From contig NC_052168.1 in NCBI RefSeq assembly GCF_902713615.1, forward strand, positions 5,890,001-5,954,000: a stretch of 64,000 bases of DNA. The letters run 5' to 3'. The notes below the pieces were generated by a model. The model was not told the DNA's origin and made no database searches. It saw only the letters and a program-made list of their open reading frames with translations. The first letter of the stretch is position 1. Each line of letters begins with the position of its first letter. Made by a program: the position numbers and the translations under genes. Positions 1,360-62,713 of this stretch are shown one piece after another. The DNA comes from Scyliorhinus canicula. Its lineage: Eukaryota.

Positions 1360-4030
1360 ATGGCTTCCCAGGTGCGTCAGAACTACCACAAGGACTGTGA
1401 GGATGCTGTTAACAAGCAGATCAACCTGGAGCTCTATTCCTCCTATGTTTACCTCTCCATGGTGAGTTTTACTTTTTTGGGAGCCTTATTTTCAAATTAA
1501 GACTGTGACTATGTTGCTTTCTGAGCAGGTAGAGTTTCTCTAGGTGAATGAGTTGGCTTTAGATATATTTCAACCCAGACTGCATGGAGTGATACTCCAG
1601 ACAGGAGTTTGGTCCTATTTTAGAATTTCTGTGTCCAGTTTAGATCTGAAATTAACACCAGGGTTCTGGATTCTGAGGTTAGTAGAAAGATTGTTTTGAA
1701 GGCACTGGAATCTCAACTTTTCCAATTGCAGGGGAGCAATTATTAGGGAGTGAAACATTAGCTGCATTTGTGGTCAGTTTACCCTCCCTAATGTGCTGAA
1801 CTCAAATGTTAAAATATTGAATATGAACAATTATCTCTTTAATTGATATTACTCCATTGTAGATTTAGTAGAAGTGATTTTTTTTTTTTAAAAATTTTAA
1901 AATTTTAATCCAAAAGTGTTATTGCTCTTGGGTTCTCCAGTTCTGCCATTTTCTATTCAGCTGAGCTTTTGACTGGGAAGAGTGAGTTTAAACAACTTTA
2001 ACAGGAGTAGACCATGTGGCGATATGCATAAGCAATTTAGTATATAATGTATACCACCTCCAACCACCAGGTGGCAGTGTAAACTGACCATGTGACTATG
2101 TGCTTAAGGGAGTTGTGCTTGGGGGAGTTGGGAGTCTTGTTGGTGGATAGACTTATTCTGCAGTATAGTTAATACTTTGTTCTATACTTATTCCAGTTAT
2201 CTTTACCATGCAGTTGTTTCATTTTGGACTAGATGTTCTGTAGTGCATTATTTACACTGGCCAGTCTACAGAACATGACCGACACAAGGCCCAGCCCGCC
2301 ACTCCACCATTTGAAGGCTGGCATGGGTTTCAACTACATTTTCCTCTCCCCTCCCCATAATCACTTCATTGCCTGAGACCAACTGCCTGTCTATCCCAGC
2401 CTTAAATGTATTCCACAATGGAGCAACAAAGCCCTGGGCAGAGAATTCCACAACCTTCTGAACTAAATTGCCGGGCAAGTAACCTTTTTTTTAAAAAGTC
2501 ATCTGATTCTTTAAGACCAGCTATTGAGGTAAAGAAAGGATGAGTTATGGAGCTGTGGGGTGTTTTTTTTTTCAGTTTGGGTGGTCTCTGGGTCTCTCCT
2601 GACTCTCCCTTTCCATTGTCTCTCCCTGCAGTCCTCTTACTTTAACCGGGATGATGTTGCCCTGCGTCACTTTGCTGAGTTCTTCAAGGAGCAGTCACAT
2701 GAGGAACGGGAACACGCTGAGAAACTGATGGAATTCCAGAATAAACGTGGAGGCTGCATCATCCTGGAAGATGTCAAGGTTGAAGGATAAGTCTAATGTG
2801 CTGAAGGAGAATCGTGTGGACTCTATATTTCTGGGGGGGGGGGGGGGGGGGGGGGGGTTGGCATTTTCTGTTTTTGCATCTGTGATGCCAACATCATGGG
2901 TAGAATTCCTGAACTGGATGAGATTATTGACTAAGGCCAGAGGTATTGTGACCCTTGACCCCCCCCCCCCCCCCCCCCCCCCCCAGTGCCATTTTATGTT
3001 TTGCAAATTGGGATGAAATGAAAATCGCTTATTGTCACGAGTAGGCTTCCATGAAGTTACTGTGAAAAGCCCCTAGTTGCCACATTCTGGCACCTGTCCG
3101 GGGAGGCTGCACAAGAGTCTGCAAAATCCAGTGAGATAAATAAGATGTGGTGGTGGTGAAACCTCTGGATCACCTGAGCTAGTGGATCAAGGTAGTTCAG
3201 GAGGAAAGATTTCCTGCAGTGTGCTGTTAACCCAGGCATTGCAGTGGTTAGCAAGGAGACAGCAGAATGTGGATCATATTTGTCCACTGTCGTACAGAAG
3301 TCATTTTGAAATGAGCGGATGGGGTTTTTATGGAACCCTTTGGCTTAAGATGTATATTGAGCAGTATCGAATAATGGTCCCGCATCACCTGCAATTGTAG
3401 CCACTCACTAGCTTCACACTTTTTTTTGGCCAGAAACCAGAGCAGGATGAGTGGAGCAATGGTCTGGAGGCAATGCAGAGAGCTCTGCAGATGGAGAAGA
3501 ATGTGAACCAGAGTCTGCTGGATCTGCACAAACTCTCCTCTGGGAACACCGACCCTCATGTGAGTTGGATTTTGATATTGGAATCTGCTCTTCGCTATAT
3601 ATTGAGTTCCACTTGGGCTTCACACTTGTATGTTGAACAATGGCAGTTGACACCATGACTTGGGAATTTGCTGTTGATAGTTGCCTTTGCTTTGCTCGGT
3701 GGGGCTGGAGCTGTAACCATTATCGTGATTCTCAGGAGGCAATTTGGATTGTTGTATTCATACTGCGACTCGTCTCATGTCCCACTCATCCACAGCACTT
3801 GTATTTATCTTTCTGCTGTGAAAACAAATGCTGTTGATTCCTAGATGTTTGTCTGAGCTAATGATACATATTTTGTGTTCTAGTTATGCGACTTCCTGGA
3901 GACTCACTACTTGGATGAACAAGTGAAGATGATCAAGAAGCTCGGAGATCACATCACCAACCTGAAGAGACTGGGAGCCCCTGAGAATGGCACGGGAGAG
4001 TACCTGTTTGACAAGCTCACCCTGGACTGA
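1360..4030 (+). CDS. fth1: Ferritin heavy/middle-chain-like, copy 1; join(1360..1461,2632..2778,3434..3559,3884..4030), 173 aa
   Basis: Spliced translation [177 protein letters not shown] phase-0 introns at vertebrate ferritin positions; ferroxidase ligands E27,Y34,E61,E62,H65,E107,Q141 present; AATAAA at 4062 and 4099. H versus M orthology not resolved. Variants D42N, R79C. Confidence 0.95.
2064..2077 (+). promoter_or_regulatory. Candidate CTCF site in intron 1 of copy 1
   Basis: CCACCAGGTGGCAG fits the CTCF core CCASYAGRKGGCRS; identical in copies 2 and 3. Confidence 0.5.
3014..3109 (-). mobile_element. 5'-truncated SINE tail in intron 2 of copy 1
   Basis: Matches the unit tail of the 33 kb SINE array; also at ~11303-11399; absent in copy 3. 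Confidence 0.75.
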
Positions 4031-60493: not shown

Positions 60494-62713
60494 ATGGCTT
60501 CCCAAGTGCGTCAGAACTACCACAAGGACTGTGAGGATGCTGTTAACAAGCAGATCAACCTGGAGCTCTATTCCTCCTATGTTTACCTCTCCATGGTGAG
60601 ATTTGTTTGTCATCCTCCTTTGAATTTGAGCTTGTGATATTATATTCTGAGCAAATTTCTTTTCTTGGGTAATGAATTGGTTTTAGTATCTCAAATTCTC
60701 TCTCTGGACTTCATCCAGTGAATGTTAATTTACAGTAGAACTCATTACACTGACTGTTCCCTCTAATGGAGTTACTCTAGGTATTTGTATCTAAAATTAG
60801 GGTTTGTAAGCTGGTAACTAAAGATTTTAGAAACCTAATCAATATTTCTAAATTGGAAATAAAAACAATTAAGTAACCAATTAGTTAGACATTGGTTCTG
60901 ATAGTTTTATCTAATTGAATGAAGGACTTAAATCCTGACTAAATTGTCCTCCAATTGAGGCTGGAGAACAGGTATGTGTCAAATGGCTGAAGTCAACTAT
61001 TTTGTTGTTAGCTTAAATGCAGTTTGATAGCTGTAATTGTTTCTTTGAAGAAATATTATTGAAGATTTGTCTTCTAATATAGCTAAGTACCCTTGCTAAC
61101 TCTTTCACAGGGTTTCAATATAATTAAATCATTAGGACACAATGGTATGGTAGAAAAACTTGCCCCCATAAAGGAGGATGTGGAGAGAGTGCAGATAAGA
61201 TTTACAAGAAAGGTTCCAGGGATGAGCAATTGGGGACTGCTTTCCTTGGGAGAGATGAAGAAATTGTGCAGCTGGTCAGGAATAAATGGGGAGGAACTGT
61301 TCCCATTTCTAAAGGATCAAGAACGAGGGTGCAAGTGAACTGAAAAACTATCCCTAAAGAGTGGTTTGAGTCCAAGTGGGCAGTGAGAAGTGAGGTGTTT
61401 GAAAGGGCATCAGATGAATATATGTGCAGGGAGGGTGGAATTGCATCATTTAATGTTTGTTTTGATAGAACCAGTGTGACATGATGGGCTGAATGGTCTT
61501 TTTAAACAAGGTATTGAGAGAATGGGATATCCCATAATTCTGGATTTTCTAGCATAGGTAAGATCTGCCTGAACTGACTCTTATCCTTTTTTCATCTCCC
61601 TGCAGTCCTCTTACTTTGACCGGGATGATGTTGCCCTGCGTCACTTTGCTGAGTTCTTCAAGGAGCAGTCGCATGAGGAACGGGAACACGCTGAGAAACT
61701 GATGGAATTCCAGAATAAACGTGGAGGCCGCATCATCCTGGAGGATGTCAAGGTTGGATTGGTCTTTTTACAAACCGACTAGCTTGACCTGACCTAATAA
61801 GGTTTCCCTGCTGTCTAGAGAATAGGGGATTAATGGATGTTGGAGGTGGGGGAAGTTAGTGCTTGGAAGTAGAAGCATCTTGTGAAATCAACATAACTGG
61901 CAAACTCAATATTCTAAGAATGTGGATGCTTGCAATGCTAAACTGGGCTCTGTAAATGTGCTCTGAAGAGATACAAGGTGAAATGGAAATGGACTCGTAC
62001 AAAAATTGGACGAACTGCCATTAGAAACTATCTTGTAAATTGTGGGGAGGGAGAGCTTTTTGATGACATTAGCAAGATTTTTATTTGGAACATTCCACAA
62101 GCTTGAACTGGGGGAAATTAATTACCACTTTAATCCAACTGTTTGCTGGTGGGATTTCCTTCCTCATCTCCAGAAACCAGAGCAGGATGAGTGGAGCAAT
62201 GGTCTGGAGGCAATGCAGAGAGCTCTGCAGATGGAGAAGAATGTGAACCAGAGTCTGCTGGATCTGCACAAACTCTCCTCTGGAAACACCGACCCTCATG
62301 TGAGTGAATTGTTTTCATTTACTCTTTTTTGGCGAACTTGAATGGTGAATGTTCCTGTCTCTCAATCTCTAGACATCTAATTTACACTTATTGGGATGGA
62401 TCATGGGCTTTTTCAGGGGACTGCTAAAGAGAAAGGACATGTGTTTCTGTTGCCCCAGTAATTCTGGAATAGAAGCACTTCAATCACTGACCCCTTCATC
62501 TGAGGAAATCTAGTTCATAATTGATACATCCTACTGGATGCTAATTACTTCTCCTCTTTCTTTCAGCTTTGTGACTTCCTGGAGACTCACTTCTTGGATG
62601 AACAAGTGAAGATGATCAAGAAGCTCGGAGATCACATCACCAACCTGAAGAGACTGGGAGCCCCTGAGAATGGCACGGGAGAGTACCTGTTTGACAAGCT
62701 CACCCTGGACTGA
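60494..62713 (+). CDS. fth1: Ferritin H/M-like, copy 9; join(60494..60595,61606..61752,62174..62299,62567..62713)
   Basis: Intact ORF; variant Y137F. Confidence 0.95.

Follow-up and report, generated by a model that had tools for sequence, protein, structure and literature searches.

Why would a shark keep nine intact ferritin genes side by side, and how can their coding sequences stay nearly the same when many of their introns no longer align? These questions are raised by a 64,000-nucleotide stretch of the genome of the catshark Scyliorhinus canicula (RefSeq assembly GCF_902713615.1, contig NC_052168.1, positions 5,890,001 to 5,954,000 of the forward strand), which we call the window. Its gene content is nine intact four-exon ferritin genes of the H/M type, each encoding 173 amino acids (aa), and with a probability of roughly 70% we read it as a 64-kb piece of a large shark ferritin array. 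According to this explanation the array would have grown by tandem duplication of whole units, in part recently (copies 1-2 and 6-9), and purifying selection, combined with exon-limited gene conversion or unequal crossover, would homogenise its exons, leaving introns and spacers to drift.

Motif scans and tblastn over the window, which contains no N, located nine sets of four ferritin exons, all on the plus strand. The first exon of each begins at the ATG and the last closes with the stop codon:

1290 to 4105, plus strand: ferritin copy 1 (lineage A); TATA box at 1290; exons 1360-1461, 2632-2778, 3434-3559 and 3884-4030; AATAAA at 4062 and 4099.
9590 to 12404, plus strand: ferritin copy 2 (lineage A); TATA box at 9590; exons 9660-9761, 10933-11079, 11735-11860 and 12183-12329; AATAAA at 12361 and 12398.
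18527 to 22146, plus strand: ferritin copy 3 (older relative of lineage A); TATA box at 18527; exons 18597-18698, 20961-21107, 21695-21820 and 21925-22071.
28281 to 31218, plus strand: ferritin copy 4 (a lineage of its own); TATA box at 28281; exons 28343-28444, 30207-30353, 30634-30759 and 31027-31173; AATAAA at 31212.
35711 to 37816, plus strand: ferritin copy 5 (chimeric); TATA box at 35711; exons 35779-35880, 36732-36878, 37236-37361 and 37608-37754; AATAAA at 37810.
41534 to 43828, plus strand: ferritin copy 6 (lineage B); TATA box at 41534; exons 41609-41710, 42728-42874, 43307-43432 and 43606-43752; AATAAA at 43807; poly(A) site at 43828.
48077 to 50440, plus strand: ferritin copy 7 (lineage B); exons 48152-48253, 49273-49419, 49848-49973 and 50233-50379.
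54246 to 56613, plus strand: ferritin copy 8 (lineage B); TATA variant TACAAATA; exons 54321-54422, 55439-55585, 56017-56142 and 56406-56552.
60419 to 62775, plus strand: ferritin copy 9 (lineage B); exons 60494-60595, 61606-61752, 62174-62299 and 62567-62713; AATAAA at 62769.

Every copy has a coding sequence (CDS) of 522 nucleotides (nt; 102+147+126+147) and an AATAAA signal 32-70 nt past the stop codon. All 27 introns are bounded by GT..AG, and the nine rebuilt models contain neither frameshifts nor internal stops. Relative to the majority, copy 1 carries Arg76Cys and Asp39Asn, and copy 5 carries Leu25His, adjoining the ligand Glu24; the protein of copy 8 is the same as that of copy 7, and the protein of copy 9 the same as that of copy 6. 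An earlier note on this DNA had described nine complete four-exon ferritin genes on the plus strand with intact ferroxidase ligands, promoters and poly(A) signals. The rebuilt models reproduce its limits of 1360-62713 exactly, and all of these features were found in the nine copies. It had also held that both window edges are spacer homologous to the internal spacers (numbered S1 to S8), as BLAST confirmed: the left edge (1-1359) is wholly covered by matches to the end of spacer S1 at ~91% identity, and the right edge (62714-64000) is 84-89% like the starts of spacers S5-S8. Three lone relics of exon 4, described below, had been overlooked.

What kind of ferritin these genes encode was asked at the level of ligands, family and phylogeny. 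All seven ferroxidase ligands, E24, Y31, E58, E59, H62, E104 and Q138 (E27, Y34, E61, E62, H65, E107 and Q141 in human numbering), are present in 9/9 copies, as are the three-fold-channel acids D128 and E131. Judging from the sequence, each gene should make a ferroxidase-active subunit of 173 aa, and such subunits may assemble into a 24-subunit iron-storing shell, as suggested by their 73-77% identity to ferritins with solved shells. The window protein matches shark proteins annotated as ‘ferritin heavy chain-like’, which carry PF00210, at an E value of about 1e-103; the best full-length matches, from Mustelus and Scyliorhinus canicula, are 94-95% identical, and a model from S. torazame is 99% identical over exons 2-4. 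Clusters of such proteins at 90% identity are large and occur in many sharks. With P0010, a 94%-identical proxy for the window protein, as the query, the nearest solved structures were bullfrog M ferritin (E value 2e-83) and human H ferritin.

A tree placed the nine copies within a clade made up of cartilaginous fishes only (elephant shark, rays and sharks), inside which sequences group by taxon. This clade stands apart from canonical FTH1, an ‘M-like’ shark group and one further shark group, with a Shimodaira–Hasegawa-like approximate likelihood-ratio test (SH-aLRT) support of 95. Exons end after residues 34, 83 and 125, boundaries identical to those of skate FTH1. Compared with canonical FTH1, represented by skate FTH1a (P0102/L003), the window genes thus share fold and family, the seven ferroxidase ligands and the intron positions, with 73-77% protein identity. 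In the skate (Amblyraja radiata) member of the clade, at L008:8037-8183 and 9874-10014, HEEREH is replaced by RDEQKQ, with loss of the ferroxidase His, and LCDF by LREF; this protein may not oxidise iron.

The genes part from canonical FTH1 in their regulation. Canonical FTH1 is a broadly expressed gene with an iron-responsive element (IRE) in its 5′ untranslated region (UTR), whereas the window genes have a short leader devoid of an IRE, form a separate clade, occur in many copies and are expressed in a sample-specific manner. Rfam searches of the window returned no IRE, whether thresholded at the gathering score or relaxed to E≤10 under permissive filters; canonical skate FTH1, searched with the same tool, gave IRE_I at 46.7 bits both in the genome and in transcript contigs. 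Among related loci, those from whale shark (L001) and bamboo shark (L002) gave no IRE at the gathering score, and those from elephant shark (L007) and skate (L008) none at E≤1. The leaders, about 40-70 nt long, are without a CAGUGN loop with C bulge; the leaders of copies 4 and 5 do contain CAGTG, which was rejected as an IRE since it forms no IRE stem. The four exons and intron positions are those of the canonical FTH1/FTL type, and the IRE of that type was not found.

Could these nevertheless be ordinary iron-regulated FTH1 genes, with the IRE in an undetected upstream exon or too diverged to be recognised? A very atypical element could escape the Rfam IRE model, and the start site was not directly mapped. 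Against this stand the blank search of the entire 64 kb set beside the strong skate control, the leaders themselves, and a TATA box 70 nt upstream of the ATG that is conserved across five species. Moreover, an RNA contig with a lineage-A-type leader (2-3 differences from copy 1), representing a close array copy, matches the genomic layout over the 38 nt that precede the ATG and shows no splice joint to a further exon. We consider a hidden IRE very unlikely. With no IRE, output would probably be set by transcription and gene number, free of translational control by iron regulatory proteins (IRPs).

If transcription sets output, what does the promoter look like? Each gene has the TATA box TATAAATA ~70 nt upstream of its ATG, with the variant TACAAATA in copy 8, and this box belongs to a core promoter block that alignments (A1, A2) revealed upstream of 9/9 genes:

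41389 to 41545, plus strand: conserved core promoter, copy 6 as example; CCTGATTGGCTA (Y-box, inverted CCAAT), CAATCATCATTGGTGATGTCA, then TATAAATACAAGA.

This arrangement can also be made out in whale shark, bamboo shark, skate and elephant shark. As both the absence of an IRE and the conserved promoter are common to the related shark, skate and elephant shark loci, the IRE-less layout is old and probably goes back to the ancestor of cartilaginous fishes. At 54246-54253, the copy 8 variant replaces the box found in the other eight genes and could weaken the promoter; several whale- and bamboo-shark copies likewise vary at the TATA positions. Possible NOBOX-type and cytoplasmic polyadenylation motifs were set aside as too short and too poorly conserved. 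The elephant shark (Callorhinchus milii) locus, L007:6001-14022, holds two clade members in tandem, both IRE-less and with this promoter arrangement, and a tRNA gene lies between them at 9924-9995. Exons of this pair are only 77-89% alike, which indicates little homogenisation.

Are the genes expressed? Copy 6 was tested against three contig runs from three studies (X1, X2 and X4) and one raw-read run (X22). In X1, X2 and X4, depth was confined to the four exons, with introns at 0-14, and these runs therefore hold RNA; summed word depth peaked at about 237,000 in X1, 13,000 in X2 and 4,100 in X4. Splice joints at 41709/41710->42727, 42872->43305 and 43432->43606 correspond to the three predicted introns, and a loose end of A10 at 43828, 21 nt past AATAAA, marks the poly(A) site. 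X1 alone yielded 319 contigs covering ~700 nt of exon, of which 121 were no more than 95-99% alike. A TT joint variant, encoding Phe35 as in copies 4, 7 and 8, occurred in X1 and X4, an 18-nt loose end of the 3′ UTR in X2 exactly matched copies 1 and 2, and several other leaders were present among the RNA contigs. The Phe35 joint, the lineage-A 3′ UTR and the additional leaders together demonstrate that more than one array member is transcribed, contrary to a scenario raised in the earlier note in which RNA would come from one copy only. X22 was nearly silent, with 3 reads in 1.5 Gb (gigabases), and expression is therefore strongly sample-specific. The separate clade, the missing IRE and this very strong, sample-specific expression support the description of the genes as a specialised ferritin. 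The several transcript types and the very high summed depth also make the proposed dosage-driven amplification plausible, although it would still be an interpretation of these data.

How, then, did the array arise? By their introns the copies fall into four old lineages, {1,2,3}, {4}, {5} and {6-9}, that are not alignable with each other: global intron identity between lineages is 44-50%, against 43% in a shuffled control. Copies 1-2 and 6-9 are 93-98% alike over introns and spacers, with introns of copies 1 and 2 being 97.5% alike. Copies 6-9 show 93-97% identity throughout in a global alignment and are therefore plain recent whole-unit duplicates; an apparent excess of likeness in their gene bodies over their spacers, seen in BLAST-weighted identities, was dropped after that alignment. 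Copy 3 is 74-78% like copies 1 and 2 in its introns where these can be aligned, and differs from them at 11-12 of 522 CDS positions. Introns 1 and 2 of copy 4 have no match in any other copy, and copy 5 matches copies 6-9 weakly and partially, in intron 1 only.

The coding sequences tell a different story, with only 4-16 differences in 522 nt between copies. Synonymous divergence (dS) is 0.04-0.09 overall while intron divergence runs from 0.03 to saturation. In young pairs, dS is 0.038 and the Jukes–Cantor (JC) intron distance 0.026-0.063; between copy 3 and copies 1 and 2, dS is 0.059 and the intron distance 0.46-0.48; and between lineages, dS is 0.05-0.09 with introns saturated. Synonymous change thus matches intron change among young pairs and levels off thereafter. 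Lineages A and B are distinguished by only two fixed sites, both belonging to the first codon of exon 4; 24/35 variable CDS sites are singletons. The ratio of nonsynonymous to synonymous divergence (dN/dS) is 0.1-0.3, and GC content at third codon positions (GC3) is 0.65 versus an intron GC of 0.41. The term “near-identical” used in the earlier note accordingly holds for the CDS (97-99%) and the core promoter and fails for introns and spacers, which cannot be aligned between subgroups. A single recent burst of near-identical copies does not describe the locus either, since the array mixes recent whole-unit duplicates with old lineages that are alike in their exons only.

Tandem arrays of similar units are hard to assemble, and with CDSs 97-99% alike it could be argued that the copies are collapsed or duplicated haplotypes of one or few genes. 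We find this scarcely credible. Even the youngest units differ by 3-7% from end to end, the others have introns that do not align and spacers that vary in length and content, several variant types occur among the RNA contigs, and similar arrays are found in independent assemblies of other sharks and in the literature. The doubt voiced in the earlier note, that the copies might be haplotype or assembly duplicates, is answered by the same differences.

What holds the exons together? One line of evidence comes from three exon-4 relics that stand alone about 2.1-2.4 kb past the stop codons of copies 1-3:

6139 to 6289, plus strand: lone exon-4 relic 1, in spacer S1; 2-nt deletion (frameshift); 93-96% like all working exon 4s.
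14412 to 14562, plus strand: lone exon-4 relic 2, in spacer S2; the same 2-nt deletion as relic 1.
24447 to 24599, plus strand: lone exon-4 relic 3, in spacer S3; in frame, with an altered start (LCDFLVFQY) and an intact acceptor.

These relics are 93-97% like working exon 4s, with unrelated flanks, and the likeness spans the splice acceptor to 4-5 nt past the stop only. Two of them are frameshifted, and coding selection cannot explain this likeness. Relic 3 is about 91-94% like relics 1 and 2 over the exon part and about 81% over the adjoining spacer. Copy 5 adds a second line of evidence. It has its own promoter and introns, and from 37602, 6 nt before exon 4, it is 94% like exon 4 and flank of copies 6-9 (37602-38049); this switch looks like the likely end point of a crossover or conversion tract. 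The pattern extends to the whale shark, in which copies a and c are 99.3% alike in exon 4 and unalignable in intron 3.

Purifying selection alone, including selection on synonymous sites of a very highly expressed gene, might be thought sufficient, with no gene conversion at all. The low dN/dS, the high GC3 relative to introns and the sharp stop of likeness at exon edges would fit such a view, as would exons that are 88-96% identical between shark orders, with a dS of only 0.13-0.17. However, the young duplicates have a dS as large as their intron distance, so that their synonymous sites are not visibly constrained, and neither the preserved likeness of frameshifted, flank-less relics, nor the closer resemblance of relics 1 and 3 to each other than of their adjoining spacers, nor the change of lineage of copy 5 at exon 4 is what coding selection would produce. 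We therefore regard selection alone as unlikely, and consider it probable that exon-limited conversion plus purifying selection keeps the CDSs alike; the older lineages would have nearly the same CDS because of such conversion or unequal crossover combined with selection. Conversion is familiar from the globin and histone tandem families, in which it keeps exons alike while flanks diverge and its tracts end where homology ends. The shark pattern is extreme by comparison, with no detectable intron homology at a dS of 0.05-0.09, and lone non-coding exon relics provide an internal control.

How does the locus relate to systems already described? The novelty of the expansion, which the earlier note had left to a literature check, does not stand: the ferritin passage of a preprint lists 155 copies of FTL and 179 of FTH1 for the Greenland shark genome, arranged in three clusters and described there as ancient, syntenic with white shark and ovary-specific (bioRxiv 10.1101/2024.09.09.611499). 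As far as that passage describes them, these clusters are likewise tandem arrays of full-length FTH1-like genes, and the window corresponds to a piece of such a cluster in the catshark; FTL and FTH1 occur together there, whereas the window holds only the ferroxidase-competent H/M type. No other paper on the shark ferritin expansion was found in the literature searched, and the preprint's ferritin passage makes no mention of the IRE, the promoter or concerted evolution of exons (bioRxiv 10.1101/2024.09.09.611499). The expansion is thus known, whereas the literature searched yielded no account of the absent IRE, of the promoter conservation or of homogenisation limited to exons.

A functional parallel is offered by the yolk ferritin of the snails Lymnaea and Biomphalaria, which is linked to reproduction, is encoded by an mRNA without an IRE and is not controlled by iron (PMC10799875). 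Snail yolk ferritin is secreted and has a signal peptide and a 42-aa insertion, whereas the shark proteins, at 173 aa, with a cytosolic N-terminus and colinear with cytosolic ferritins, have neither feature; snail and shark genes arose independently. Mammalian FTHL17 and FTMT are also H-like and without an IRE, and both are intronless genes of the retrogene type; FTHL17 is multi-copy, linked to the germline and early embryo and without ferroxidase activity, and FTMT has a mitochondrial presequence. The shark genes differ from both in keeping three introns, as seen in spliced RNA, and all ligands, and do not have a retrogene structure.

In our explanation, the window genes belong to a ferritin clade found only in cartilaginous fishes, with the intron positions of FTH1, a short IRE-less leader and a conserved promoter with TATA and CCAAT/Y-box elements. 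The tissue in which it acts would be the ovary or oocyte, if the Greenland shark clusters are a guide (bioRxiv 10.1101/2024.09.09.611499, ferritin passage), and its role may be to supply ferritin in bulk, independently of iron, to an oocyte or egg that is large, yolky and long-lived, where it would store iron or protect. A bolder form of this proposal is that the IRP/IRE-free lineage, driven by TATA and CCAAT/Y-box elements, was kept for >400 million years in cartilaginous fishes and expanded, in the service of the oocyte, to copy numbers in the tens or hundreds, as a vertebrate counterpart of snail yolk ferritin, with exons held by conversion that erases the history recorded in introns. We advance this only tentatively, at somewhat less than even odds.

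Several observations weigh against our reading of the array. The high RNA depth is summed over the array, and which of the nine copies are transcribed is not separated by it. The private letters of copy 6, A at 43378 and G at 43822, occurred in no RNA contig of the three runs, and the copy-6-type leader was covered in X4 only. The runs carry coded tissue labels, so for ovary or oocyte specificity in this species we rely on the ferritin passage of the Greenland shark preprint, and the loss of IRP control is deduced from sequence features. Furthermore, the low dS to whale shark and bamboo shark genes indicates that slow evolution or some synonymous constraint contributes, and conversion is therefore not the sole force. 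CDS sites that conflict with the intron lineages (16, 104, 168 and 366) were examined as evidence for conversion and rejected, being mostly CpG, so that evidence for mosaics within the CDS is weak.

Two further observations concern the RNA of particular copies. At 43378 and 43822 the RNA reads G and C, so that copy 6 may be weakly expressed or the sampled animals may differ from the reference. Words from the leader and exon 1 of copy 5 were found in 0/10 sampled cases in RNA runs of this species, a result that is no proof of silence.

A more sceptical interpretation is that the array is largely a neutral by-product of unequal crossover in a recombination-prone region, in which most copies contribute little and dosage was not selected. 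Words of copy 5 exon 1 and the private letters of copy 6 are indeed missing from RNA, the relic exons and the chimeric copy imply frequent unequal exchange, G-rich minisatellites lie in the spacers, and pseudogenes occur in the bamboo-shark and whale-shark loci. However, none of the nine copies has lost its open frame, a ligand, a splice site, the promoter or the poly(A) signal, and dN/dS lies well below 1. Conservation of the promoter reaches to the elephant shark, and summed expression is very high and includes several transcript types. A mostly neutral origin thus seems improbable to us.

The remaining features lie in spacers and introns or in related loci. No other gene was found in the window, and ten open reading frames in the spacers gave no Pfam match. 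Several lineage-B spacers (S5-S7) contain a G-rich minisatellite that could form G-quadruplexes (38962-39157, 45249-45711 and 51801-51941) and a 20/40-nt minisatellite, (GGCACTGCCAGGAGGCCAG)n (40432-40530, 46951-47088 and 53150-53247). Both minisatellites may act as hot spots of unequal exchange. The spacer before copy 5 carries a 355-nt unit resembling a tRNA-derived short interspersed element (SINE), present in 2.5 tandem repeats at 98% identity (33006-33884), and the promoters of copies 6-9 are directly preceded by related SINE pieces (such as 41210-41300). Spacers S5-S8 share an open frame on the minus strand, about 95 aa long (…RRGHCIVSTVSILKYLFDISILE…), at 39881-40160, 46412-46690, 52690-52970 and 58857-59140; it has no Pfam match, and stops lie upstream of it in some copies. 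Copy 1 contains in its intron 2 a long hairpin (2830-2987, about 155 nt) that gave weak, sub-threshold matches to many microRNA (miRNA) models on both strands and is probably a palindromic repeat. Two array copies of the bamboo shark (Chiloscyllium punctatum; L002:4300-4452 and 12174-12284) have stop codons in exon 1, and such arrays therefore also hold pseudogenes.

What does the locus mean for ferritin biology? Textbooks use ferritin to illustrate how iron controls translation, and here a vertebrate lineage appears to run a ferroxidase-competent ferritin without that control, in many copies and at a very high level in particular samples. The array also offers a natural example for weighing conversion against selection, with exons, introns and dead exon relics side by side; if our explanation is correct, the lone relics would serve as a natural control that parts the two forces. 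It would also open the question of how shark eggs and ovaries handle iron and oxidative stress over long periods.

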